A stretch of DNA of 64,000 bases from positions 1,054,001 to 1,118,000 of the forward strand of contig MU008167.1 in the NCBI GenBank assembly GCA_010909165.1, given 5' to 3'. Under the pieces are notes generated by a model that saw only the letters and a list, made by a program, of their open reading frames with translations, ran no database searches and was not told where the DNA came from. Source of the stretch: Anthoceros angustus (lineage: Eukaryota > Plantae > Anthocerotophyta). Within the stretch, counting starts at the first letter, position 1; every line of letters begins with the position of its first letter. Shown piece after piece: positions 3,098 through 60,416 of this stretch. The position numbers and the translations under genes were made by a program.

Positions 3098-4408
3098 TCA
3101 GTTAGAGACCATAGTTTCTGTCTCCTTCACAAACCCCTCCCCGGTCCATTCCTTGTCCGACGCCAGCCCTCTGCGTACAGCCTTCTTCTTTTCAATAGCT
3201 TCTCTCTGAAGCCTTACAAGTTCAGTATGAGTTGTAAAATACTCCAGAGACGCACCACGGAAGTCATCAATGGAAACGAAATTGTGTTTTGTCATGAACG
3301 CCTTCAGTTCATCACACATTGTCTTGATATGGGGGTATCCATGCACCATGACCCCTGTACAAACCTGCACCGTGTTCGCTCCCAGCAGAAGAAACTCCGC
3401 AGCGTGGTTCCCTGATTCAACACCTCCGATTCCAGACAGAGATACATCTCTGCCTGCGAAATCAGACCTGATCATCTTTGCAATGGACATGACCTTGGCC
3501 AGAGCAATAGGTCGGACAGCCTTGGACGAATACCCTCCCGGGGTCGAGTACCCTTCAACGCAGGGCTCTGGCCGGAGAGTGTCCAGGTTCACTCCCATCA
3601 CGCTCATCACAGTGTTGATGGCGGACACGCCCTCGCAACCTGCCTCCAACGCAGTGCGCGATGGCTGAGTGATGTCGGTGATGTTAGGCGTCATCTTGGC
3701 CCAAACAGGCACCGTCGCCTTGTTGTTGATCCAGCCGCATACCTCCTCCAGCAAGCTGCAGTCTTGACCTATAGCCGCACCCATCCTCCTCTCGGGCATA
3801 CCATGCGGGCAAGAGAAATTGATCTCCAGAGCATCAACACCAGCATCCTCCACTCTGGCCACGATCTCCTCCCAAGCAGCTCGGTTATACTCTTCCATGA
3901 TGGAAGCAATGAGGACGCGGTCAGGATATTCCTTCTTCAGCCTCCTCATCTCCTCCAGCATTGTCTCAAACGGCCTGTCACTGATGAGCTCGATGTTCTC
4001 CCACCCGATCACCTCCTTCTTGCCCGTTCCATTGTTGGTGGCATGCATGCGCGCATAGCGCGGAGTCACGTTCACCACCTTGGAGGAGTCCAGAGCCACG
4101 GTCTTGGCTATCACAGCGCCCCAGCCCTCGTCGAATGCCCGCTTCATCACCTGGTAGTTCGTCCCTGGCGGGCCTGAGCCGATGACAAACGGATTAGGCA
4201 GCTTCAAACCGTTCACGGTGACGCTGAGATCAGGACCTGCTGCATCCTGGCCGCTAGCCCGCAGTTTGAGCTGGCCCGAGCTAGGCCGAGGCCTAGTCCT
4301 AGGCCATGCTCCCCTTTCAAGGCTCTCAAGATGGCGCCGGAACTCCCCTCCGACCTGGTCTGAAGAGGATAACAAGCTGGACACTCCAACGTGCTTCAAA
4401 CTTGCCAT
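3098..4408 (-). CDS. PYD1: Dihydropyrimidine dehydrogenase (plant PYD1, PreA-like) with transit-peptide-like N-terminus, intronless
   Basis: 436-aa ORF with DLSVTVNGLKLPNPFVIGSGPPGTNY, GWENIELISDRP, EINFSCPHGMPERRMGAA and WAKMTPNITDIT. Confidence 0.95.
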   Translation of the reverse strand: MASLKHVGVSSLLSSSDQVGGEFRRHLESLERGAWPRTRPRPSSGQLKLRASGQDAAGPDLSVTVNGLKLPNPFVIGSGPPGTNYQVMKRAFDEGWGAVIAKTVALDSSKVVNVTPRYARMHATNNGTGKKEVIGWENIELISDRPFETMLEEMRRLKKEYPDRVLIASIMEEYNRAAWEEIVARVEDAGVDALEINFSCPHGMPERRMGAAIGQDCSLLEEVCGWINNKATVPVWAKMTPNITDITQPSRTALEAGCEGVSAINTVMSVMGVNLDTLRPEPCVEGYSTPGGYSSKAVRPIALAKVMSIAKMIRSDFAGRDVSLSGIGGVESGNHAAEFLLLGANTVQVCTGVMVHGYPHIKTMCDELKAFMTKHNFVSIDDFRGASLEYFTTHTELVRLQREAIEKKKAVRRGLASDKEWTGEGFVKETETMVSN

Positions 4409-20974: not shown

Positions 20975-23900
20975 TCATCTCGGGCAATGTATGCTGCAAC
21001 CTGCTTGAAACTGGAGATGCTCCTCTTCCCCAACCAAAAAGCTATGCACCAGTCCGTCCTTATCTGTCCACCAGCTCTGACCTGGCTGCTTCCATGCCCT
21101 GCTACTTTTTCGTCTTGCCTCCACATTCTGTGCCTGCTCCTGCATCTGGGCACCGGTGTAAATGTTTGACATCACCACATATGCTGATGCATCTGTTTGG
21201 TCTAGCTTCACTGCTTCATTGAAGGCGTGGCATGCCACCTCCACATTGCTCCACTTTCGACAGGCTCCCAACAGAGTGTGCCAAACTGCAGCACTTGGCG
21301 ATACAGGCATCGTCCTTATTAAATCTAGTGCCTCATCCAGTAGTCCTGCACGACCCAGGAGATCCACCATGCATGTGTAGTGGTTCTCCGTGGGAGTAAT
21401 GCCATGTTGTCTCCTCATGGCCTCAAAGTATTCACGGCCCTCGACCACTAGACCAGCATGACTGCACACTGTTAGCACACTAAGGAATGTGATGCCGTCT
21501 GGCTGGATGCCATCCTCTTTCATTCTCTGGATCAAGTCAAAGACCACCTCACTGTTCCCTTGACAAGTGTACCCTGCAATAAGAGCGTTCCAGATTACGA
21601 CGTCTTTTTCAGGCAATGCATCAAACACCTGCTGTGCATCAACGGTGCTGCCAGACTTTCCATACATGTTGATTAAACTGCCGGCTACGAATACATCCAC
21701 CTGAAGGCCTTGCTCTACAATCTGTGCATGTAGCTGCCTTCCCATATGCAAAGCTGCTACATTTGCACATGCCTGTAGGAGGCACACGAATGTCACTGGA
21801 TCAGGTACACCCCTACCTTCTTCTCGCATAGCACTGTAGAGACGAAATGCTTCCTGACCCATACCCTGCTGAGAATACCCTGCTAGCATGGCATTCCATG
21901 TCACCACATTTTTTTCACCAAGTCCGGCAAACACTTTTTCTGCATCTCCCAAGCTGCCACACTTTGCATACATGTTCACCAGACTGCTGGCTACAAATAA
22001 ATCAGCTTCATGTCCCCCTTCGCGGATCTCCTTATGCAGCTCCTTTCCCTTCTCCAAACCCAGGGTGCCCAAAGTTGCACATGCCTGCAAGAGGCACACA
22101 AATGTTGCAGAATCGGGTAAAGCCATGCCTTCATCTTGCATAGAACTGTAGAGACAAAAAGCTTCACGCACCATACCCTGCTGGATATACCCTGCTATCA
22201 TGGCATTCCACATAGCCACATTTTTTTGACCGAATTTGTCAAACAATCGTTGAGCATCCATTAAGCTGCCACACTTTGAGTACATGTTTACCAAACTGCT
22301 GGCTATAAAGACATCACCTTCATGTCCTCGTCTTCTGATCTGCAAATGAAGCTCCTTCCCCTTCTCCAAGGCTGGAGTGCCCACACTTGCACAAGCCTGC
22401 AGGAGGCACATGAATGTCACAGAATCAGGTGAAGCCATGCCTCCTTCTTGCAGCGCACTGTACAGACAAAGGGCTTCCAGTCCTGTGCCCTGCTGGGAAT
22501 ACCCTGCTATCATGGCATTCCACGTCACCAAATCTTTTTGACCAAGTCCATCAAACACTTGCTGAGCATCCTCCAAACTCCCACACTTTGCATACATGTT
22601 CACCAAACTGCTAGCTACAAACCCATCAGGCTCATGACCTTGTTCTTGGATCTGCATATGAAGCTCCTTGCCTTTCCCCAAAGCTGGGGTGCCCATACTT
22701 GCACATGCCTGCAGGAGGCACACATATGTCACGGAATCAGGTACAGCCATGCCTTCCTCTTGCATAGCACTGTAGAGACCAAGGGCTTCCTGCCCCATAC
22801 CCTGCTGGGAGTACCCTGCTATCATGGCATTCCATGTGACAACATCCTTTTGTTTGAGTTCCTTGAATACTCTCTGGGCATCTTCCAAGCTGCCACACTT
22901 TGCATACATGTTCACCAGATTATTGGCTACATACACATCGGTTTCATGTCCTAGTTCTTTAATTTTCTCATGAAGCTCTTTACCCTTCTCCAGGGCTGGG
23001 GGGCCCATACTTGCACATGCCTGTAAGAGGCAAGAAAAAGTTATCAAATTAGATAAAGCCATGTCTTCCCCTACGAGAGCACTGTAGAGACGAAGGGCTT
23101 CCTGCCCCAACCCTTGCTTGGCATACCCTGCTATCATGGCATTCCACGTCACCACATCTTTATGATCAAGACCATCAAACACTATCTGAGCATCGTCCAA
23201 GCTCCCACACTTGGCATACATGTTCACCAAAGCGTTAGCTACAAACCCATCAGCATGATGTCCTCGCTCCTTGATTTGTGCATGAAGGTGTTTTCCCTTC
23301 TGCAGTGCCAGGTTGCCCACACTTGCACATGCCTGCAGGAGGCACAAGAATGTCACAGAATCGGGGACAACAACACCCTCTTCTTGCATAGTACTGTAGA
23401 GGCGAAGGGCTTCATGCCCCATGCCCTGCTGGGAATACCCTGCAATCATGGCATTCCATGTCACCACATCCTTTTGTTTGAGTTCCTTGAATACTCTCTG
23501 GGCATCTTCAAGCTGCCACACTTTGCATACATGTTCACCAGATTATTGGCTACATACACATCGGTTTCATGTCCTAGTTCTTTAATTTTCTCATGAAGCT
23601 CTTTACCCTTCTCCAGGGCTGGGGGGCCCATACTTGCACATGCCTGTAAGAGGCAAGAAAAAGTTATCAAATTAGATAAAGCCATGTCTTCCCCTACGAG
23701 AGCACTGTAGAGACGAAGGGCTTCCTGCCCCAACCCTTGCTTGGCATACCCTGCTATCATGGCATTCCACGTCACCACATCTTTATGATCAAGACCATCA
23801 AACACTATCTGAGCATCGTCCAAGCTCCCACACTTGGCATACATGTTCACCAAAGCGTTAGCTACAAACCCATCAGCATGATGTCCTCGCTCCTTGATTT

Positions 23901-25719
23901 GTGCATGAAGGTGTTTTCCCTTCTGCAGTGCCAGGTTGCCCACACTTGCACATGCCTGCAGGAGGCACAAGAATGTCACAGAATCGGGGACAACAACACC
24001 CTCTTCTTGCATAGTACTGTAGAGACGAAGGGCTTCATGCCCCATGCCCTGCTGGGAATACCCTGCAATCATGGCATTCCAAGTCACCAGATCTTTATGA
24101 CGAAGTCCATCAAACACTCTCTGAGCATCCTCCAAACTGCCACACTTGGCATACATGTTCACCAAACTGCTGGATACAAACACATCACCTTCATACCCTC
24201 CTTCTCTGATTTGCGTATGAAACTGCCTCCCCGCCCCCAATGCCACGGTTCCCACACTTGCACATGCCTGCAAGAGGCTCACAAACGTCATGGAATCAGG
24301 TAGGACTACACCTTCTTCTTGCATAGAACTGTAGAGACGAAGGGCTTCCTGCCCCATTCCCTGTTTGCAATACCCTGCTATCATCGCATTCCACGTCACC
24401 ACATTTTTTTGACCAAGCCTGTCAAACAATCTCTGTGCATCCTTCAAGCTGCCGCACTTGGCATACATGTTAACCAAGCTGCTGGCAACAAACACATCAC
24501 CTTCACATCCTCGTTCTCGAACCTGGGCATGAAGCTGCCTCCCTTTCTCCAAACCTGGCGTGCCCACATTTGCACATGCCTGCAGGAGGCTCGCATATGT
24601 CACAGAATTGGGTACAGCCGTGCTTCCTTCTACCATGACACTGTAGAGTCGAAGGGCTTCCTGCCCCATGCCCTGCTGGGCATACCCTGATATCAATGCA
24701 TTCCACATAACCACATCCTTTCGCCCAACTCCATCAAACACTCTCCGTGCTTCTTCCAAGCTGCCACACTTTGCATACATGTCCACCAAGCAACTAGAAA
24801 CAAACAAATTATCCCCAATGCCACTGGCCAACACATCAGCATGCACCTGCTGCCCAGTTTTCAAATCCAATCCTCTTCCACAAGCCTGAAGAGCTGCCAC
24901 AAACACATGCCCATTTGGCCTCACACTAGACCCACACATCCTACGATACAGCTCTATGGCTTCCTTGTATCGTCCATGATTGACATGTGCAGAAATTATG
25001 GCAGACCACGTGAACGTATCCGGCTCAGCAAGAGCATCAAAGACCTCCATCGCATCTTGCAACCTGCCATGCGAAGCGTACATCCTCAGGACGTGAAATC
25101 CCAGGAAAGTGTCTGACTCGTACCCCTTTCTCACCGTAAAAGCATGTACCCGCCTACCGAGCACAAGATCCTTCTTCCCGACACATTCCTTCAGGACAGC
25201 ATAAAAGAGAGACCCTGAAACCTCACTATCTGCCTGCACCAGAACTTCCAAAGCCTCCACAGCCTCAGTGAGATGCCCCTCCTTACATAGCCTGCTCACC
25301 GTTTCAACAGTCACGCCCCTACCGTCACCTGCAGGCCTGCGACAGTCAGGATCATCCAGTAAGCTCCTGTTAAAGCCACAACGACCCATCCCCATATCCA
25401 GAGCAGCAAGCCGCACACCCACCCAACCGGGCTTGCAGAAGTTGTTTAACCAGAGGACCTCGTGAGACTGCCAGTGCAGGAAGTCTGGCCACCAGAGGCT
25501 CATCGTAATTTGCACGTTATCCCACCAAACTGTTGGGTCCCAAAAGAATTGTCTCCACAAAGCCTCCTGGCGAGGTGGGCAAGCCCCGTCTCCAGCTACA
25601 CATCTTCTTTGCCTTGCAAAGGTACATAGCGTCCCGACTTGGTTGTGCGCCAGCTGTTGATTCCTCGAAGAGATGCCAGCGGAAGCTCTTCGTAAAATAC
25701 CCATCACGCCACCGGCCAT
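20975..25719 (-). CDS. PLS-class PPR protein A: presequence, degenerate PDF motif, PLS array, E1/E2, WW-type PG box, no complete DYW; one frameshift (~23510) inside a 624-bp internal duplication
   Basis: ORFs 23461-25827 and 20975-23521 join at a 1-bp deletion (TCTTCAAG vs TCTTCCAAG). Repeated VVTWNAMIAGY / VTF.CLLQAC / VFVA.SLVNMYAKCG; C-terminus KQPGQSWWTDKDGLVHSFLVG. Start at 25719 chosen by homology with protein B. Confidence 0.92.
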
Positions 25720-25928
25720 GGCACGGCCTGAGCCATGCATGCAAGCCGCACGACCCCATAGCTGGTGATCAAGACCTGCCATCGATGCAGCTGGCCGAGA
25801 GGTCAAACGTATTCGATACAAAAGCATGTTAGAAAAACCTTTGCTACTCGCATCATGAGTTATGAAAGCAAAGCGAGGGCGCAGCGACAGTGGGCGCTTG
25901 TTGCATCCATGGCGGGCCAGTGTGTGTC

Positions 25929-28900
25929 ATGGCTGCTGGCCTAACAGGCATTCTAGGAAGAGCTTCGGCTCGTCTGTCGTCAAGAAACAAGCTTTTTGCG
26001 CACAACCAAGTCGGGAGATGGAGCAGCTTGGCACGACAGCCAAGTGGACTCCTGGCTGCAGACGGATCTTCCAACGAGGGTGGTCGCCAGGAGCATTTGT
26101 GGCGACAGTTTTTCTGGGACCCAACACTGTGGTGGGATAACAGGCAACATAAGAGGAGCCTCCGGGCGCCTGACTTCCGGCACAGGCATTCCCAAGAGGT
26201 CCTCTGGTTGAACAATTTTCACAAGCCAGCATGGGTGGATGCGCATCTTGCTGCCCTGGATATGGGGATGGGGCGTGGTGCCTCCAACAGGAGGTTGCTG
26301 GATGATCCTAACCATGAAGGTGTGGGCGTCACGGCCGAAACTGTGAGCAAGCTATGTCATGAGGGCCATCTCACTGAGGCTGTTGAGGTTTTGGAGGCAC
26401 TGGTGGAGACAGAGGGCTGTATTTCTGGATCTCTTTGTTATGCTGTGCTGAAGAAATGTGCGTTGAAGAAGGATCTTGTGATGGGTAGCCGCGTGCATGC
26501 TCTCACGGTGAAACTCGGGTACCAGTCAGACACGTTCCTAGGGTTCCACACCCTGCGGATGTATGCTGCTCATGGCAGGTTGCAAGATGCGGTGGACGTG
26601 TTTGAGGCCGTTGCAGAGCCTGATGCCTTCACGTGGTCTGCCATTATTTCTGCGCATGTGAAACATGGACAGGACAAGCAGGCTATGCAACTGTATCATC
26701 GTATGCGCCGGTCCAGTGTGAAGCCAGATGGGCATGTGTTTGTAGCAGCTCTTCAGGCTTGTGCAAGGGGATCGGACTTGAAATCTGGGCAGCAGGTGCA
26801 TGCCGATGTGTTGGCCACTGGCATGGAGCCTAATTTGTTCGTTTGTAGTTGCTTGGTGGACATGTATGCCAAGTGTGGCAGCTTGGAAGACGCTCAGAGA
26901 GTGTTTGATGGACTTGTTCAGAAGGATGTGGTGACATGGAATTCTTTGATAGCAGGGTATTCCCAACAGGGCATGGGGCAGGAGGCCCTCCAGCTGTACG
27001 GGGCCATGCTAGAAGAAGGCGTGGCTGTTCCCAACTCTGTTACATTTGCATGCCTTTTGCAGGCTTGTGGCAGTGTGGGTGACTCTGCTCTGGAGAAGGG
27101 GAGGCAGCTCCATGCTCAGATCAGAGAACGAGGACATCAAGCTGATGTCTTTGTAGCCAGTAGTTTGGTGAACATGTATTCCAAGTGTGGTAGCTTGACG
27201 GATGCTCAGAGAGTGTTTGATGAACTTGGTCCAAAAAATGTAGTAACATGGAATGCCATGATAGCAGGGTATTGTCAACAGGGCATGGGGGAGGAAGCCC
27301 TTGATCTCTACAGTGCTATGTTAGAAGGAGGTATGGCAGTACCCGATTCCGTGACATTTGTGTCCCTTCTGCAGGCATGTGCACGTGTGGGCACACTGGC
27401 ACTGCAAAAAGGGAAACAGCTTCATTCACAGATCAGAGGAGTCGGTCTTGAAGTGGACGTGTTTGTAGCCAGCAGTTTAATAAACATGTATGCAAAGTGT
27501 GGCAGCTTGGAAGACGCTGAGAGTGTGTTTGAGGGACTTGATCAAAAGGATTTGGTGATGTGGAACGCCATGATAGCAGGGTATTCCCAGCAGGGCATGG
27601 GCCAGGAAGCCCTTCGTCTGTACACTACAATGCAAGAGGAAGGCATCACTGTACCAGACTCTGTTACGTTCCTCTGCCTCTTGCAGGCATGTGCAAGTAT
27701 GAGCACCCAAGCATTGCAAACAGGGAATCAGCTTCATGCAGAAATCAAGGAGCGAGGACATCAAGCTGATGTATTTGTAGCCAACGGTTTGGTGAACATG
27801 TATGCGAAGTGTGGGAGCCTGGAAGACGCTCAGAGAGTCTTTGATGGACTTGGTAAAAAGGATTTGGTGACATGGAATGCTATAATAGGAGGGTATTCCC
27901 AGCAGGGTATGTTGTCAAAAGCCCTTCATCTCTACAATGCCATGCAGGAAGAGGGCCTGGCGGAACCTGATTCTGTGACGTTCGTGTGCCTCTTGCAGGC
28001 TTGTGCAAGTGTGGGCATCACAGCGTTGGAGAGTGGGAAGGATCTTCATATGCAGATCAGAGAGCGAGGACATGAAGCTGATGTGTTTGTCGGCAACAGC
28101 TTGGTGAACATGTATGCAAAGTGCGGCAGCGTAAAGGACGCTCAGAGAGTGTTTGATGGACTTGGCAAGAAAAATGTGGTGACATGGAATGCCATGATAG
28201 CAGGGTATTCCCAACAGGGTATGGTGCAGGAAGCCCTTGGTCTTTACAGTGCTATGCTAGAAGGAGGTATGGCAGTACCTGATTCCGTGACATTTATCTG
28301 CCTTCTACAGGCATGCGCAATTATGGGCACCCTGGCATTGCAAAAGGGAATGCAGCTTCATACACAGATCAAAGGAGCTGGACATGAAGCTGATGTATTC
28401 GTAGCCAACAGTTTGGTAAACATGTATGCAAAGTGCGGCAGCTTGGAAGATGCTCAGAGAGTCTTTGACAGACTTGGTAAAAAAGATTTGGTGACATGGA
28501 ATGCTATGATAGGAGGGTATTCACAGCAGGGCATGGGGCAGGAAGCTCTTCATCTCTACAGTGCTATGCAAGAAGAAGGCACGGCTGTACCTGACTCGGT
28601 GACATTTGTGTCCCTCCTGCAGGCATGTGCAACTATTGGAACCCCGGCGTTGGAAAAGGGGAAGCAGCTTCATGCAGAAATCAAGTCACTGGGACATCAG
28701 TCTAATGTTTTTGTAACCAGCAGTTTGGTGAAAATGTATACGAAGTGTGGGAGTTTGGAATATGCGCAGAGTTTGTTTGACGGAATTGATCAAAGAGATT
28801 TGGTGATGTGGAATGCCATGATAGCAGGGTATTCTCAAAACGGTATGGGGCAGGAAGCCTTTCGTCTCTATAGTGCTATGCAAGAAGATGGCAGGGCTGT

Positions 28901-30023
28901 GCCTGATTCCATGACATTCGTCTACCTCCTGCAGGCATGTGCACGTATGGGCACTCTGGCATTGCAGAAGGGTAGGCTGGTTCATGCTCAAATCAAGGAA
29001 CGAGGGCATCATACTGATGTCTTTGTGGCCAACAGTTTGGTAAACATGTATGCAAAGTGTGGGAGCTTGGAAGATGCTCAAAGAGTGTTTGACGGACTTG
29101 ACCAAAAGGATTTGGTAACATGGAATGCCATGATAGCAGGGTATTCCCAGCAGGGTATGGGGCAAGAAGCCCTTTGTCTTTACCATGCTATGCAAGCACA
29201 AGGCATGGCTGTGCCTGATTCCGTAACATATGTGTGCCTTCTCCAGGCATGTGCAAACGTGGCAGATTTGCATTCAGGAAGGCAGGTACATGCACAGATT
29301 GTAGCGCAAGGGCTTCAGGTCGATGTGTTCGTAGCAGGCAGTCTGATTGACATGTATGGAAAGTCTGGGAGCATGGTTCATGCAAAGCAGGTGTTTGATG
29401 CTTTGCCTGAAACAGACGTCGTCGTCTGGAATGCACTCATTGCAGGCTACGCCAGTCAGGGCGACAGTGACGTGGTCTTCAACTTGGTCCAGAGAATGCA
29501 AGAGGATGGCATACAGCCAGACGGCATCACATTGTCTAGTGTACTAACAGTTTGCAGTCATGCAGGTCTAGTGAACAAGGGATGGGAGTACTTCGAGGCA
29601 ATGACCAGACACTACTGCATCCCTCCTACGGAGAAACACTACACATGCATGGTGGATCTCCTAGGTCGTGCAGGACAACTGGATGAGGCACTAGATTTAA
29701 TAAGCTCAATGCCTTTACCGCCCAGTGCTGCAGTTTGGCACACTCTGTTGGGTGCTTGTCAAAAGTGGAGCAATGTGGAGGTGGGACGCCATGCGTTCAA
29801 TGAGGCAGTGAAGCTAGACAAGAAAGATGCTGCAGCATATGTGTTGATGTCGAACATATACACCGGTGCTCAGATGTGGGAGTGGGCACAGAAAATGCAA
29901 GCGAGGAGAACAAGAATCAGGGCATGGAAGCCGGCAGGTCTGAGCTGGTGGACGGACAAGGAGGGAGTGGTGCATAGTTTTTTGGTTGGGGATATGAAGC
30001 ATCTTCCCAGCAAGCAAAGTTGA
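25929..30023 (+). CDS. PLS-class PPR protein B (~1364 aa, intronless): presequence, intact PDF motif, about 33 PPR motifs, E1/E2, WW-type box, truncated before the DYW deaminase
   Basis: Uninterrupted ORF with 10 S-type MY(A/S/T/G)K-type motifs plus P2-L2-S2; ends KPAGLSWWTDKEGVVHSFLVGDMKHLPSKQS*; no HxE or CxxC. Confidence 0.95.
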   Translation: MAAGLTGILGRASARLSSRNKLFAHNQVGRWSSLARQPSGLLAADGSSNEGGRQEHLWRQFFWDPTLWWDNRQHKRSLRAPDFRHRHSQEVLWLNNFHKPAWVDAHLAALDMGMGRGASNRRLLDDPNHEGVGVTAETVSKLCHEGHLTEAVEVLEALVETEGCISGSLCYAVLKKCALKKDLVMGSRVHALTVKLGYQSDTFLGFHTLRMYAAHGRLQDAVDVFEAVAEPDAFTWSAIISAHVKHGQDKQAMQLYHRMRRSSVKPDGHVFVAALQACARGSDLKSGQQVHADVLATGMEPNLFVCSCLVDMYAKCGSLEDAQRVFDGLVQKDVVTWNSLIAGYSQQGMGQEALQLYGAMLEEGVAVPNSVTFACLLQACGSVGDSALEKGRQLHAQIRERGHQADVFVASSLVNMYSKCGSLTDAQRVFDELGPKNVVTWNAMIAGYCQQGMGEEALDLYSAMLEGGMAVPDSVTFVSLLQACARVGTLALQKGKQLHSQIRGVGLEVDVFVASSLINMYAKCGSLEDAESVFEGLDQKDLVMWNAMIAGYSQQGMGQEALRLYTTMQEEGITVPDSVTFLCLLQACASMSTQALQTGNQLHAEIKERGHQADVFVANGLVNMYAKCGSLEDAQRVFDGLGKKDLVTWNAIIGGYSQQGMLSKALHLYNAMQEEGLAEPDSVTFVCLLQACASVGITALESGKDLHMQIRERGHEADVFVGNSLVNMYAKCGSVKDAQRVFDGLGKKNVVTWNAMIAGYSQQGMVQEALGLYSAMLEGGMAVPDSVTFICLLQACAIMGTLALQKGMQLHTQIKGAGHEADVFVANSLVNMYAKCGSLEDAQRVFDRLGKKDLVTWNAMIGGYSQQGMGQEALHLYSAMQEEGTAVPDSVTFVSLLQACATIGTPALEKGKQLHAEIKSLGHQSNVFVTSSLVKMYTKCGSLEYAQSLFDGIDQRDLVMWNAMIAGYSQNGMGQEAFRLYSAMQEDGRAVPDSMTFVYLLQACARMGTLALQKGRLVHAQIKERGHHTDVFVANSLVNMYAKCGSLEDAQRVFDGLDQKDLVTWNAMIAGYSQQGMGQEALCLYHAMQAQGMAVPDSVTYVCLLQACANVADLHSGRQVHAQIVAQGLQVDVFVAGSLIDMYGKSGSMVHAKQVFDALPETDVVVWNALIAGYASQGDSDVVFNLVQRMQEDGIQPDGITLSSVLTVCSHAGLVNKGWEYFEAMTRHYCIPPTEKHYTCMVDLLGRAGQLDEALDLISSMPLPPSAAVWHTLLGACQKWSNVEVGRHAFNEAVKLDKKDAAAYVLMSNIYTGAQMWEWAQKMQARRTRIRAWKPAGLSWWTDKEGVVHSFLVGDMKHLPSKQS

Positions 30024-30479
30024 ACATGAGTTTCGCAAGATGATAGCTGTTCTTCACACGGGCGTATGCGGTGATACCGCCTACGTCTGTCATTTGCGGG
30101 CATGGATTTCAGCGGTGCCAACTTCCGCAGTGTCTTGTGCATATGATGTCTTCAGCATTCTATCCCCTACCATTTTTGCGCGAGCATTCCACCTCCCTGC
30201 TTAAAATATACGAAGGAGATCGCACTCGCGCTCGGGGGAATTTGCCCATCACCCACGTCCTTCTTAGCGATTTCGGGTTTTGGGAAGGTATCAGATGAGT
30301 CCTGTTTGATTTTCATCATGTGAAATCTTCATCTTGAATCACTCACACATAAATTTGAAGATTTTGATTGAAACCATCTTATTTTGTCTGTTTAATACCA
30401 AAAAGTTGGTCATTTATTTTATCACGCTTAATAACACGCGCTGATCAAATCAGATAAAATGGTGAAAAACTAAAAAAAA

Positions 30480-31100
30480 AAGTCTAAGTAATAGCTACTA
30501 TGTTAACAAATGCCTGTATTGTATGCTTCATCTATAATCTCCTAAGAGTTCGCGATGAATAGTGCCTATGAAGAGCTGCCTAGAGAGGACTTTTAGTGAT
30601 CAGTGGTCTGGGGTTGGCAGCTATGTCGTTGCGTCCAGCCTTCGAAATATATAAGGGCTAGGGCAAAGTCGTGTATTTTAGTTTGTCTTGTGTTATGAGA
30701 CCTTTGGATATCTAGCCAAAGAGTTTGGCCCGAAGGCAAGGGCAATAGCCAAAAGACAGTAGATAGTTAGCCTATTTTCTATATTCTGTGAATAAAGAGC
30801 AGTACCTCAAGGAGGTTAAACTCTTTGTGTATTGAGGTTAAACTCTTTGTGTATTCTGTGAAAAAAGAAAACACCTCAAGGACGTTAGACCCTTTCTGTA
30901 TTCTCTGAATAAAGAGCAGCGCCTTGAGGAGGCTAAACTCTCTGTATTCTGTGAATAAAGAGCGGCACCTTGAGGGGGTCGTTTGCGAGTCGTCCTTATA
31001 GCCTATTGATGTGTCGTGAGGTTGAGAACGTTGAGAGCTTGAGCATGCACTGGGTAAAGAGTGAATTGGTGAGATCTCAGGTCGTCGGAAAGTTAGCACT
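30480..31100 (+). mobile_element. LTR-like fragment with an internal ~46-bp tandem repeat (30781-30975)
   Basis: Shares AGCTACTAT, CTGCCTAGAGAGGACT.TTAGTGATCA, a TATA-like ATATAAG.GCTAG and GTGAATAAAGAGCAG with 62600-62920. Confidence 0.55.
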
Positions 31101-57251: not shown

Positions 57252-57512
57252 TATCTATGGTCACCTTATTCGGAAAGCAGCGCACAAGCCCACGGGTAGC
57301 TGGCTACCTATGTCTATGTGTATCCATGTGTGATAAAAAGGGAAGTTTCAGGTATATGTGATCCGTTTCCGGATTCAGGAGGACGCCAACCGGTAGACGG
57401 TAATAAATTCCCCAGGCCCCCAGCCTATCCTAGGGTTTGAGCTGGTAAGTCCTGGCTCCTGACTAGCGTGTGGTGTGAGCAACGAGAGGAAAGGTGAGAG
57501 TTGGAGGGAGGC

Positions 57513-60416
57513 ATGGCCGCCGAGGGGGACCGCGTGAGGGCCCGGGCGCGCGTCCAGGTGATGGCGCTCATGCACGAATGCAGACACAGTGCTGACTGGA
57601 AGTCCAAGCAGGAAAGCCTGCAGCGCGCTATGGACCTGGTGCTTCAGGAGGTGCCGGGGCAGCTCCCGGAACTGCTGCTACTTGTGCTGGAGGAGCTGCA
57701 AGGAGGCGGGTGGGAGCAGCGGAGGTATCTGGCAAAAGTGACGGAGCTGCTAGGGTTCAGGTTCTTGAATGAGGTGCCGGTCATGGTGCCGATCATGCTG
57801 CCGACACTGTTGCTGCTGCTGCGGGATCACGTTCCCGAGGTGGCGATGGAGGCCATTGTTGCAGCTCAGAAGCTCTCGAAACGCGGCTTCTGGGAGCTGG
57901 TTGTGCAGGAGAAGGAGGCCGGGAAGGTGGATGACTCGGTGGTGGAGGTCTGGCGGGGGATGGCTGTCGTGAAGGAGCTTGTGGCTCCCATGCTCGGCCC
58001 GGGTCATGATACCCGGGTGCGTACGCGTGCGGTTAAGTATTTCGAGCACCAGGCTTTGCTCTTCTCTCCGGATCCGGAGAGGTCCGGGAAGGAGGAGGAG
58101 TGTAGTGTGGCGTGGATCGAGGGCCGGGTGCACCCCGTGCTGGCTGTGAGCGAGTTAGGGCAAGAAGCTGTGCGGAGTGTGGATCTGCTGCTGGCCCTGC
58201 TGCGGGAGCCCGGGGCTTCCAAGTTGTCGTGTACTTTGGTGCTGGTGTTGTTTAACAGCTTGGAAAACATTGCCAGGAGGCGGCCGAGTTTGGTGAAAAC
58301 GATCGTGCCGGTGTTGATTGATTTGGCGCCCCGGTGTGATGGTTTGAAGGAGCACTTGGTTTCGGACGGTCTGATGCCGAACGTGGTGCGATGTCTTTGG
58401 ATCAATTTGAACCGCCTTCTCAGGTGTTGCCAGATGCATGCCGCAGACTTGCACAAGCGGTTGCTGCCGGTCGTGAAAGAGATGCAGTCGGATTTAATGC
58501 CTCGTCTAAGCCGGGGCCAGCGGGCGGAGAACGAGAAGGCTGGTATGGATCGGCGGGCAAGAGATGGGAGGTTGCCGGGATCTTCTTTTGCTAACCCGGT
58601 GCCGGAGCTTGGTCCTGCTGATGTGGATGGGGTGCGGAAGCGGACTTTCACGCAGGAGAATGGGGGCAGGGTTGAAGGAGTGGTTGATCGTGCTAAACGA
58701 TCAAAGCTGAGCCCCGGTGAGCAGGAGTTGGAGTCAGCGACCAAGCTTCAGCAGGTTGTGCGACCGGTTGCACAGGATGGTAGGATTCCTCATCAGGAGT
58801 CGATGGATGTGCTGCAGGAGCAGGTTGAACCGCAGCAGGAGCACATGCGGCCTCTGGAGCAGAGCCAACTCCAGCAGCTGATCGGCATGATCGCCGCAAT
58901 GTTGGCACGAGGAGAGCAAGGGGCGCAGTCATGTAAGATCCTGGTTGAAAGTCTCACCACAGACATGCTGGTCGACGTATGTATTGCGAATTTGGTTCAC
59001 CTGCCGGCAGTTCGTCCCTCGGAAGACCTATGTATTGCGAATTTGGCTCACTTGCCGGCAGCCCGTCCCTCGGAAGAAAATGATCCCGAACCCAGTGCCG
59101 CAGACAACACATCAGGGCCGGCTGGTGTGTTGCCTGCTGTTCCGGTTTTGGAGTCGCAGCATGCAGCACCGGAGGAGGAACTTCATGTTCTGGACGATGT
59201 GCCTGCTCCTACATCCGCAGGCATTACAAGACAAGCACTGCTGCCTCAGGCAGTGCTAGCAGACCACACAGCGAGCTCACCTGTGACAAGGAGCGAAGAA
59301 GTGAACAGCATGAGAGACCCGAGAGCCGCAACGGCCATAGCCACCGAAGCCACGACGGTGAGTGTCTCCAGAGACACAACACCTAGTAACGGGTCTCAGC
59401 CGGCAGCAGATCTGCCCAGAGCTAGGTTTGTCCCAATGAGGCTGGGGAGGGAACCAGCCTCAGGATCAGAAATCAAGGAGAAAGGCAGCGACAGTGAATC
59501 ACACCCCAGCCCTGCAGCACTTCCACCCAACAGCACATGGCAAGCAACAGCAGCAGCAGCTACAGCAACAACGGCAATTCGTTCAGATCCTGGAGGCGTC
59601 GAGGAAGACACTGGTAGCCAACCTGCAGTATCTACATTAGGAAATGGCCCCGAGCATGAAAGGGTGCCGGATAGTGGCAGCTCTCCCTCGGGAGATGTAC
59701 CTACAGATGAGCCACAAGATCTTGGCAAAGCATCACTTGAGCGCATTCGACAAAGCTACATGGCAACTTCAGGTGGTGGGGGCCTGCAGGCTGGTTTGAT
59801 TTTCCTTCTTGAAGGTAATGCTTCCTCGCTGGATTTCAAAGATTATTACGCGCGTCACGACGGACATGCTCTGGCCATGGACGTCCTTGCTCGCATATAC
59901 AGTGCATTCGGTGTCCGTGCGGCCCACGAGGCCTTCTTCGGAAAACTCTGCCATTGCATCTTGCACGCCTTCCCTCCAGACTCCCTGGTCCTCGCCAAGC
60001 TGTTGTTTGAGGCCCCGTTTGTTCCTACATACACACTCTCCCTCCTGGACCACCTTTGCCAATCCAAGGTCCGGGTTGGGCAGGGCCTGCACACTACCGG
60101 CCTGCCCGTCAGGCGGGATCATCCAGACGATCTCCGTCTACGGGACGAGTTTGTGCAGTTCGCGCTTCACTTCGCAGTTCACGAGATGACGGAGCTGAGA
60201 CTGGGCGCAATCGACTTGGTGGTCGAGGAGCTGTACCCTCTGCATCGTTTGTCAGCAAAGATCGAGGCCTTTGCGATGGACATGTTAGACCAATCGAAAG
60301 TGGTTTCGGAGAACCATGTTAGGACAGTCTCGCTGTTCCTGGCTCTTGGCAAGAAAAGGCCTGAGTTGTTGTGCCATCTGTTCGCAATTTACGGCAACGC
60401 TCCGGTACGCAAATAA
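57513..60416 (+). CDS. Symplekin/ESP4-like protein (N-terminal HEAT domain plus divergent middle), intronless, lacking the C-terminal domain
   Basis: N-terminus resembles plant symplekin (VQVMALM..SLQRAMDL..LLRDHVPEVA..AVKYFEHQALLFSPD..SWIEGRVHPVL-type blocks, IARRRP, MLVDVCIANL.HLP); late LGAIDLVVEELYPL and LFLALGKKRPELL. Homology continues in another frame to 60522. Confidence 0.75.
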   Translation: MAAEGDRVRARARVQVMALMHECRHSADWKSKQESLQRAMDLVLQEVPGQLPELLLLVLEELQGGGWEQRRYLAKVTELLGFRFLNEVPVMVPIMLPTLLLLLRDHVPEVAMEAIVAAQKLSKRGFWELVVQEKEAGKVDDSVVEVWRGMAVVKELVAPMLGPGHDTRVRTRAVKYFEHQALLFSPDPERSGKEEECSVAWIEGRVHPVLAVSELGQEAVRSVDLLLALLREPGASKLSCTLVLVLFNSLENIARRRPSLVKTIVPVLIDLAPRCDGLKEHLVSDGLMPNVVRCLWINLNRLLRCCQMHAADLHKRLLPVVKEMQSDLMPRLSRGQRAENEKAGMDRRARDGRLPGSSFANPVPELGPADVDGVRKRTFTQENGGRVEGVVDRAKRSKLSPGEQELESATKLQQVVRPVAQDGRIPHQESMDVLQEQVEPQQEHMRPLEQSQLQQLIGMIAAMLARGEQGAQSCKILVESLTTDMLVDVCIANLVHLPAVRPSEDLCIANLAHLPAARPSEENDPEPSAADNTSGPAGVLPAVPVLESQHAAPEEELHVLDDVPAPTSAGITRQALLPQAVLADHTASSPVTRSEEVNSMRDPRAATAIATEATTVSVSRDTTPSNGSQPAADLPRARFVPMRLGREPASGSEIKEKGSDSESHPSPAALPPNSTWQATAAAATATTAIRSDPGGVEEDTGSQPAVSTLGNGPEHERVPDSGSSPSGDVPTDEPQDLGKASLERIRQSYMATSGGGGLQAGLIFLLEGNASSLDFKDYYARHDGHALAMDVLARIYSAFGVRAAHEAFFGKLCHCILHAFPPDSLVLAKLLFEAPFVPTYTLSLLDHLCQSKVRVGQGLHTTGLPVRRDHPDDLRLRDEFVQFALHFAVHEMTELRLGAIDLVVEELYPLHRLSAKIEAFAMDMLDQSKVVSENHVRTVSLFLALGKKRPELLCHLFAIYGNAPVRK

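Follow-up and report, generated by a model that had tools for sequence, protein, structure and literature searches.

In Anthoceros angustus, gene B almost certainly encodes an organelle-targeted, PLS/E-type PPR protein in which a PDF module that shares ancestry with the ssDNA-binding PDF motif of OSB proteins, and is predicted to fold on its own, lies at the N-terminus of the mature protein and is joined to the first PPR motif by a flexible tether of about 24 residues. The gene was analyzed within a window of 64,000 nucleotides (contig MU008167.1, positions 1,054,001 to 1,118,000), and all coordinates given here are those of the window. It is a member of a large and old subfamily of PDF-PPR proteins, present in mosses, lycophytes, ferns and A. 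angustus.

The forward-strand ORF at 25890..30023 holds gene B, and its first in-frame ATG, at 25929, opens an uninterrupted frame of 1364 codons plus stop (25929..30023, +), recognized from the list of open reading frames and from Pfam matches to PPR and E_motif. The domain order is leader, PDF module, linker, PPR array, E motif and stop. As assembled, the gene is intact, with neither an intron nor a stop between the PDF and PPR parts of the genomic ORF, and the peptide that the original prediction placed at 26091-26258 (+) is the exact translation of that stretch. Given the 1364-residue protein opened by the ATG at 25929, this motif corresponds to residues 55-110, inside a PDF module at 26073..26261 (+, residues 49-111) which we delimited by phmmer, alignment, AlphaFold (AF2) and Foldseek, and which is predicted to comprise a helix, three short strands and a second helix. 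No database record matches the gene B product exactly.

Ahead of the module lies an Arg/Ser/Ala-rich, nearly acid-free leader (25929..26072, +, residues 1-48), and composition over residues 1-54 (8 Ser, 8 Ala, 6 Arg and 2 acidic residues) resembles that of an organellar presequence. The start codon aligns to M37 of the neighboring paralogue, gene A (tblastn, DNA alignment), and modeled confidence immediately ahead of the module is low (pLDDT <50). Pfam assigned no family to the N-terminal 157 residues, and found no SSB/OB domain in gene B. In an AF2 model of residues 40-420, the PDF module (pLDDT 84-94) and the PPR solenoid (>90) are confident domains on either side of a stretch at pLDDT <50 (model residues 74-93), which we read as a flexible linker, some 24 residues long, running from the module to the first PPR helix (26262..26333, +, residues 112-135). 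The PPR array itself (26334..29765, +) comprises about 30 motifs in repeat blocks that resemble one another, as judged by the Pfam models PPR, PPR_1, PPR_2 and PPR_3 (PPR_2, E 1.3e-169; PPR, E 8.7e-137), by self-similar tblastn matches, and by the helical-hairpin solenoid predicted by AF2.

The C-terminal end (29766..30020, +) consists of an E motif (PF20431, residues 1280-1340, 42.5 bits against a cut-off of 27.3) and an E2-like extension delineated by alignment to the C-termini of relatives. Two of these, P0077 and P0091, align by tblastn as far as 29993 and 30002, respectively, and gene B terminates just past the '...FLVGD..H' position at which the DYW domain begins in relatives. Pfam detected no DYW domain in gene B. 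We considered a hidden or frameshifted DYW domain 3' of the gene, and rejected it, as a tblastn search with the C-termini of the DYW-bearing P0077 and P0091 found no DYW-like sequence anywhere in the window. The E motif, together with similarity to PLS-E-DYW relatives, leads us to infer that gene B belongs to the E subgroup of PLS-class PPR proteins, which are organellar RNA-editing specificity factors. Gene B shares with that subgroup a long PPR array, an E motif, an end at the E2/DYW boundary and a presequence-like leader, but its array is unusually long at about 30 motifs; it differs from the PPR-DYW editing enzymes in lacking the deaminase domain. Pfam, tblastn and AF2 bear out the original proposal that the module follows a presequence-like leader and stands ahead of the first PPR helix in a PLS/E-type protein, here one without DYW.

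The identity of the module is carried by three lines of evidence that agree: database matches, conserved columns and predicted fold. An exhaustive phmmer search of 1.84 billion proteins with a 65-residue query returned 584 matches at E<=1e-3 and 144 at E<=1e-10, and 67 of the best 150 of those 584 are built like OSB proteins, with PDF copies after an SSB/OB domain. Significant matches at E values around 1e-18 include proteins named as OSB1 and OSB3, among them a Populus 'protein OSB1, mitochondrial-like' (E 4.7e-18) and a Euphorbia 'organellar single-stranded DNA binding protein 3' (E 1.5e-19). A word-indexed search with gene B residues 45-125 yielded 20 candidates, none of them significant, a null which reflects the sensitivity limit of that method rather than absence, given the many matches found by phmmer. 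In an alignment of 53 PDF motifs, the four invariant residues (W9, D21, D33 and F34) and the ten near-invariant ones (F13, W19, R23, K26, P32, L43, W44, P51, W53 and V54) are all retained in gene B, and a core shared with OSB proteins (W8, F12, W18-W19-D20, R22, K25, P31-D32-F33, K/R34, H35, K/R36, W43 and W52) is kept in gene B and in 130 PPR-linked copies. On these sequence grounds the module and the PDF motif of OSB proteins are genuinely homologous.

Structure prediction points the same way. The AF2 model of the module (pLDDT 88.7) had as its sole Foldseek matches among Swiss-Prot models the PDF regions of Arabidopsis OSB1-4 (TM by query 0.73-0.89), the best being residues 183-243 of OSB1 (TM 0.89, rmsd 1.1 A), with predicted models on both sides of the comparison. 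At the level of models, then, its fold is that of the OSB1-4 PDF regions. We found no solved structure of any PDF motif. The alpha-beta-beta-beta-alpha topology raised the possibility of a dsRBD, which we rejected: Foldseek found nothing similar to the module in the PDB, and an independent structure search gave only unrelated helical matches (best Z 3.7).

Gene B is nevertheless not itself an OSB protein, because it lacks an OB/SSB domain and only a leader of about 48 residues precedes the module. The PDF motif of Arabidopsis OSB1-4 (Zaegel et al., 2006, as cited in PMC6963530 and PMC4166229) has about 55 residues and a core, W..F..P..WWD.R..K...PDF.H....LW....P.WV, that is found in gene B too; in OSB proteins, however, it lies C-terminally, after an OB/SSB-like domain, whereas in gene B it is N-terminal, has no OB domain, and stands ahead of a PPR array.

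The fusion is not a rarity of this one gene. Mosses, lycophytes and ferns carry it as well, and gene A is a further case in the same window. The PDF motif occurs in PPR proteins, known from annotation or derived from transcripts, of Sphagnum, Selaginella, Diphasiastrum, Adiantum and Pteridium, some with E and DYW domains (for example Selaginella XP_024517303, Diphasiastrum KAJ7517631, Adiantum KAI5076972 and Sphagnum CAM6033764), which are labeled in databases only as hypothetical or PPR proteins. In these proteins a leader comes first, then PDF, then the PPR array, and E and DYW may or may not follow; one to three tandem PDF copies stand ahead of the array, as they stand after the OB domain in OSB proteins; many of them carry the DYW domain that gene B does not. 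Their PDF motifs are 40-63% identical to that of gene B. Diphasiastrum alone has at least 71 clusters of PDF-carrying PPR proteins, and across 72 of its paralogues conservation within the first 200 residues is highest in the PDF block. Among the best 150 of the 584 phmmer matches, 13 are PDF-PPR proteins, all from seedless plants or unnamed samples. PPR-linked PDFs group with nine OSB-linked ones with good support, in trees that are poorly resolved and built on a motif too short to decide whether PPR-linked PDFs had a single origin; the AU test gave p 0.41 for a single clade, which neither rejects nor demonstrates one.

The recognized architecture of editing PPR proteins is presequence, PPR array, E and DYW, and we know of no report of a folded domain before the first PPR motif in the described editing factors of model species. 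A PPR array lies parallel to its RNA, its N-terminal motifs contacting the 5' nucleotides, so the module would touch the strand directly 5' of the PPR footprint. Contact there may add affinity or hold the target unfolded, and we consider it possible, if somewhat short of an even chance, that the PDF module is a sequence-nonspecific clamp for single-stranded nucleic acid; taken as a whole, the combination of the PDF-PPR architecture with such a clamp is the best explanation we can offer, and we rate it at about even. In favor of the clamp are the identity of the module, the ssDNA binding reported for the PDF of AtOSB1 (PMC6963530), the retained basic and aromatic core, the separate tethered domain, conservation across lineages, dN/dS below 1, and tandem copies. 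The module may further serve as a built-in helper in lineages without the MORF cofactors of seed plants, as MORFs are confined to seed plants (PMC13386178), whereas the 13 PDF-PPR proteins noted above were from seedless plants or unnamed samples. Any analogy to MORF/RIP and ORRM-type accessory domains would be functional only, that of a non-PPR module aiding a PLS protein on RNA; MORFs show no kinship to PDF in sequence or fold and, unlike PDF, an N-terminal fusion in cis, they target L motifs in trans.

What is reported of OSB proteins weighs against the clamp, in that recombinant OSB1 and OSB2 prefer ssDNA over dsDNA or RNA (PMC4166229), a preference which leaves an RNA role in the PPR context neither proven nor excluded. 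Together with the finding that the PDF of AtOSB1 alone suffices to bind ssDNA (PMC6963530), it favors a reading in which the module retains its ssDNA preference and anchors the PPR protein to the nucleoid, at transcription bubbles, R-loops or replication and recombination intermediates, where nascent RNA would be met co-transcriptionally, the role that the original prediction put first. The conserved core common to PPR-linked and OSB-linked motifs is compatible with such a tether, and through the flexible linker seen in the model the protein could engage two different ligands simultaneously. However, the two groups of motifs differ at several columns (for example FF.DP versus LF.NP, in a comparison dominated by one species), such that ligand preference could have shifted, and hundreds of site-specific factors placed on DNA would compete with abundant OSB proteins. 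We regard anchoring to DNA as unlikely.

The lack of a DYW domain also counts against the best explanation, since gene B might depend on a partner or might have no role in editing. If it does edit, a protein that stops after E2 without a deaminase would need one, and the module might be supposed to bind protein rather than nucleic acid, its partner being an OSB, a second PDF-PPR or, where the protein is of the E type like gene B, a DYW deaminase supplied in trans. A discrete domain on a tether predicted to be flexible would suit this role, and AtOSB2 is reported to be a tetramer (PMC6963530). But DYW-bearing relatives, including P0077, P0091 and many Diphasiastrum proteins, also have PDF, so that recruitment of DYW is not its general role, and its conserved surface has the basic and aromatic character to be expected of a nucleic-acid binder; recruitment of a protein partner is in our judgement distinctly unlikely.

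The paralogue and transcript coverage bear on whether gene B is functional. Gene A (20975..25719, -) stands head-to-head with gene B and is a paralogous PDF-PPR-E gene in two frames, identified from ORFs 23461..25827 and 20975..23521, tblastn with gene B, and Pfam. Its one frame break, near 23510, is consistent with a single missing base in a short G run, and its second frame bears PPR and E motif matches in Pfam. The gene A PDF motif (25387..25572, -; tblastn, DNA alignment and the 53-motif alignment) is 72% identical to that of gene B, and has replaced the near-invariant Arg and Lys after WWDN. A CpG-decay signature in gene A was looked for and is not evident, with only 6 of 180 differences of this kind. 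A PYD1-like gene adjoins; its best named matches are from ferns, a lycophyte, liverworts and mosses, at 75-83% identity.

The frame break and the two lost basic residues of gene A are what might be expected if the module had been inherited passively through duplication or retroposition of the PPR family, with gene B, or the local pair, silent or decaying. In a run presumed to be RNA, its library type being guessed, 26118-26583 is covered in one continuous stretch and 25810-26117, including the start codon, is uncovered. Transcription of gene B is thus weakly supported, the uncovered 5' end being compatible with a relic and the weak coverage counting against the clamp. Against a relic, the gene B ORF runs uninterrupted through 1364 codons with every conserved PDF column kept, the fusion has been retained across lineages that split hundreds of millions of years ago, and dN/dS between the paralogues is 0.24 in the leader, 0.32 in the PDF and 0.24 in the PPR part (0.24-0.41 over all parts). 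Further, among the differences in a partial list from contigs of a related organism, the single one in the gene B PDF region is synonymous. A relic without present function is improbable.

We found no paper describing a PDF-PPR fusion, in agreement with the original expectation of novelty, in a search that did not cover the original OSB description (Zaegel 2006). Domain-based surveys have missed it, including a kingdom-wide survey from 2026 of domain fusions in editing factors, which mentions neither OSB nor PDF, as would be explained by the lack of a PDF model in Pfam. We tentatively suggest, as a possibility less likely than not, that PDF-PPR proteins are an ancient, numerous and unrecognized class of organellar RNA-editing factors of seedless land plants, in which the fused OSB-type module is required for target engagement, and may replace MORF in cis or link editing to single strands of organellar DNA while transcription proceeds. 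If a conserved, folded, probably nucleic-acid-binding N-terminal domain holds for many PPR editing proteins, the model of the editosome would gain a new part, and the role of the PDF motif would extend past DNA maintenance. Such a module could furnish synthetic PPR tools with a small affinity element, and might account for the ability of PLS proteins in seedless plants to function when MORFs are lacking.

The segment preceding the PPR array of gene B (25929..30023, +) was read in the original prediction as the PDF motif of plant Organellar Single-stranded DNA Binding (OSB) proteins, an identification upheld by three independent lines: sequence, conserved columns and predicted fold. The peptide on which it was based is an exact translation of 26091-26258 (+), and no ORF in the window is longer than the one containing it (25890..30023). 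Searching 1.84 billion representative proteins by phmmer with a 65-residue gene B segment returned 584 matches at E<=1e-3 (144 at E<=1e-10), among them 'protein OSB1, mitochondrial-like' of Populus (E 4.7e-18) and 'organellar single-stranded DNA binding protein 3' of Euphorbia (E 1.5e-19); 67 of the best 150 of these 584 have the OSB architecture, an SSB/OB-like domain followed by one to six motif copies. In an alignment of 53 motifs, gene B keeps the invariant W9, D21, D33 and F34, and the near-invariant F13, W19, R23, K26, P32, L43, W44, P51, W53 and V54. The AlphaFold2 model of the segment (pLDDT 88.7) comprises a helix, three short strands and a helix, and when compared with Swiss-Prot models its sole matches were the PDF regions of Arabidopsis OSB1, OSB2, OSB3 and OSB4 (TM by query 0.89, 0.75, 0.77 and 0.73, respectively). 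Almost every confident match among AlphaFold DB clusters is a plant protein, several being named OSB and the majority unnamed. No solved structure resembling the model was found by Foldseek, and a Foldseek-independent search reached a best Z of 3.7; a suspected dsRBD-like relationship was dropped because these searches gave no resemblance. Two clusters, A0A7S2HFR7 and A0A3M1NXI7, are weaker matches (TM 0.88 and 0.71; identity 31% and 25%), and, judging by their accession series, the first may come from a protist transcriptome and the second from a metagenomic bacterium; these models are a possible hint of PDF-like folds beyond land plants.

In gene B a single ORF runs from a presequence-like leader into a folded PDF module of OSB type, which a flexible linker connects to a long PPR array; an E motif comes last. 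Its first in-frame ATG, at 25929, opens a protein of 1364 residues, and the remaining Met codons of the N-terminal region lie only directly past the PDF motif, at about residues 112-114. Residues 1-54 contain 8 Ser, 8 Ala and 6 Arg with just 2 acidic residues, a composition compatible with an organellar presequence. Pfam assigns no family to residues 1-157; further on it recognizes numerous PPR repeats (PPR_2, E 1.3e-169) as well as the E motif, which occupies residues 1280-1340 and scores 42.5 bits against a cut-off of 27.3. The protein stops where the DYW domains of its relatives start, and no DYW-like sequence occurs 3' of the gene or elsewhere within the window; this copy is intact as assembled, and of E type without DYW. 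A second model, of residues 40-420, drew on 19 homologous N-terminal regions (mean pLDDT 88.5). It places the PDF module (residues 49-111, 26073..26261; pLDDT 84-94) outside any unstructured presequence, and continues through about 20 residues of pLDDT below 50 into a confident PPR solenoid, into which the module does not pack. From this succession the PDF module is predicted to fold as a domain of its own, held by a flexible tether. Upstream of the gene B start, out-of-frame ATGs at 25862 (+) and 25909 (+) open an overlapping 92-codon ORF and an 11-codon ORF, respectively; whether they fall within the 5' UTR depends on the transcription start. Closely 3' of the gene, at 30770-30990 (+), lie several head-to-tail units of about 55-60 bp ('...attctgtgaataaagagc...cctcaaggagg.taaactct...').

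The fused architecture is real, but it is no one-off, being that of a large family. The motif is N-terminal to a PPR array in 13 of the best 150 of the 584 matches, from Adiantum capillus-veneris (two proteins), A. nelumboides, Pteridium aquilinum, Selaginella moellendorffii, Diphasiastrum complanatum, Sphagnum compactum and S. jensenii. As the Pteridium ORFs derive from a transcriptome, PDF and PPR are co-transcribed there. Some of these proteins are of PLS-E-DYW type, including P0077, which is the closest relative among the matches listed (63% motif identity), and P0091, from Sphagnum, and another, P0005, carries three tandem PDF copies before its array. A word-indexed search with one Diphasiastrum motif recovered at least 71 more distinct PDF-PPR clusters, all from this one species, of which many have E and DYW domains; their PDF copies number one (36 clusters), two (29) or three (6). 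PPR-linked and OSB-linked motifs tend to differ, for example FF.DP versus LF.NP, and gene B has PPR-type residues at such columns, in a comparison dominated by one species. So short a motif gives poorly resolved trees; all 34 PPR-linked motifs fall with 9 OSB-linked ones in one well-supported group, and an AU test does not reject a single PPR-linked clade (p 0.41). On these motif sequences, an origin in one or few ancient fusions is plausible.

The paralogue gene A (25719 to ~21014, -) lies head-to-head with gene B, with its parts in identical order and, by alignment, the start codon at the homologous position. Its PDF motif (25387-25572, -) is 72% identical to that of gene B, and the near-invariant Arg and Lys after WWDN are substituted; several conserved Arg/Lys have become Val, Thr, Met, Trp or Leu, with the aromatic core retained. 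This loss of basic residues may reflect relaxed constraint or an altered ligand. As assembled, gene A has one frame break near 23510 (frames switch within 23461-23521, -), which fits one absent base in a short G run within a conserved 'KCGSL.DA' PPR segment, and could be a true frameshift or an assembly error. Nei-Gojobori dN/dS between the genes is 0.24 in both the leader and the PPR part, 0.32 in the PDF and 0.41 in the linker; the module is thus under constraint similar to that on the rest of the protein, and that it is a functionless relic in the gene B copy is quite improbable. Contigs of a related organism differ from gene B at 25 or more positions, those listed comprising 11 synonymous and 14 non-synonymous differences; of the listed ones, a single synonymous difference falls within the PDF segment. 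Distantly related seedless plants have conserved the PDF-PPR arrangement, which is under purifying selection.

Expression was assessed from assembled contigs of a run whose RNA library type is guessed, and which shares its sample with the best DNA run. It matches the window without a break or splice joint over 26118-26583, a stretch that takes in the greater part of the PDF together with the linker and first PPR, and spans several unique parts of gene B as well as 29853-30392. Little or no depth was seen at 25382-25575 and at 25810-26117, which includes the start codon, and such holes prove nothing; given these and the guessed library type, transcription of the whole fusion in Anthoceros angustus is likely, if weakly supported. 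Over 25584-30173, single bases of the window are deleted in the best DNA run at 12 or more positions, several within gene B; these deletions are probably read or assembly noise in its contigs rather than window errors, because the other run from this sample, where it has coverage, does not share them.

Elsewhere in the window, an unbroken 436-codon ORF at 3101-4408 (-) encodes a plastid-type dihydropyrimidine dehydrogenase (PYD1-like, Pfam DHO_dh), whose best named relatives, from ferns, a lycophyte, liverworts and mosses, are 75-83% identical, with none near-identical. A 971-codon ORF at 57501-60413 (+) has the N-terminal domain of Symplekin/PTA1, a scaffold for 3'-end processing.

In OSBs, the PDF motif spans about 50 residues and occurs in one to several copies C-terminal to the OB-like domain; that of AtOSB1 alone suffices for ssDNA binding, and OSB1 and OSB2 prefer ssDNA over dsDNA or RNA (PMC6963530, PMC4166229, PMC6451138). 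In gene B, by contrast, the module is N-terminal, before the PPR array. OSBs are described with one to four copies; five phmmer matches (P0001, P0002, P0004, P0007 and P0015) far exceed this, with 8-13 tandem motifs, and an SSB-like domain was detected near the C-terminus of one and in none of the others. In a further match, P0034 (Coptis chinensis KAF9616283, 1526 aa), a kinesin motor domain comes after an SSB-like domain and three PDF motifs; the protein represents an unusual fusion, or else two gene models that were merged.

The functions originally proposed for the fusion are hypotheses. Since PPR arrays bind RNA with their N-terminal motifs toward the 5' side, a tethered single-strand-binding PDF module would contact the strand immediately upstream of the PPR footprint. 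We tentatively regard nonspecific single-strand binding, raising affinity or keeping the target unfolded, as its most likely role. Tethering of the PPR protein to ssDNA or nucleoids, which the preference for ssDNA reported for OSB PDFs would favor, seems unlikely. An aromatic and basic core is common to PPR-linked and OSB-linked motifs; a module given over to protein interaction is less likely again. As to the favored single-strand binding, MORF cofactors are restricted to seed plants (PMC13386178), and all PDF-PPR proteins of named source among the matches listed (best 150 of 584) come from seedless plants, a distribution that would be compatible with a helper role, as a correlation alone.

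The statement that no description of the fusion was known holds for the papers reached by full-text search, subscription literature lying outside its scope: both modules are known, and their joint arrangement was not found described. OSB, PDF and ssDNA receive no mention in a survey from 2026 that covered domain fusions of editing factors kingdom-wide (PMC13386178) or in a 2024 PPR review (PMC11897456), and domain surveys likely overlook the fusion because Pfam has no PDF model. The PDF-PPR fusion is easily tested, and of clear interest for the fields of organelle RNA editing and PPR engineering.
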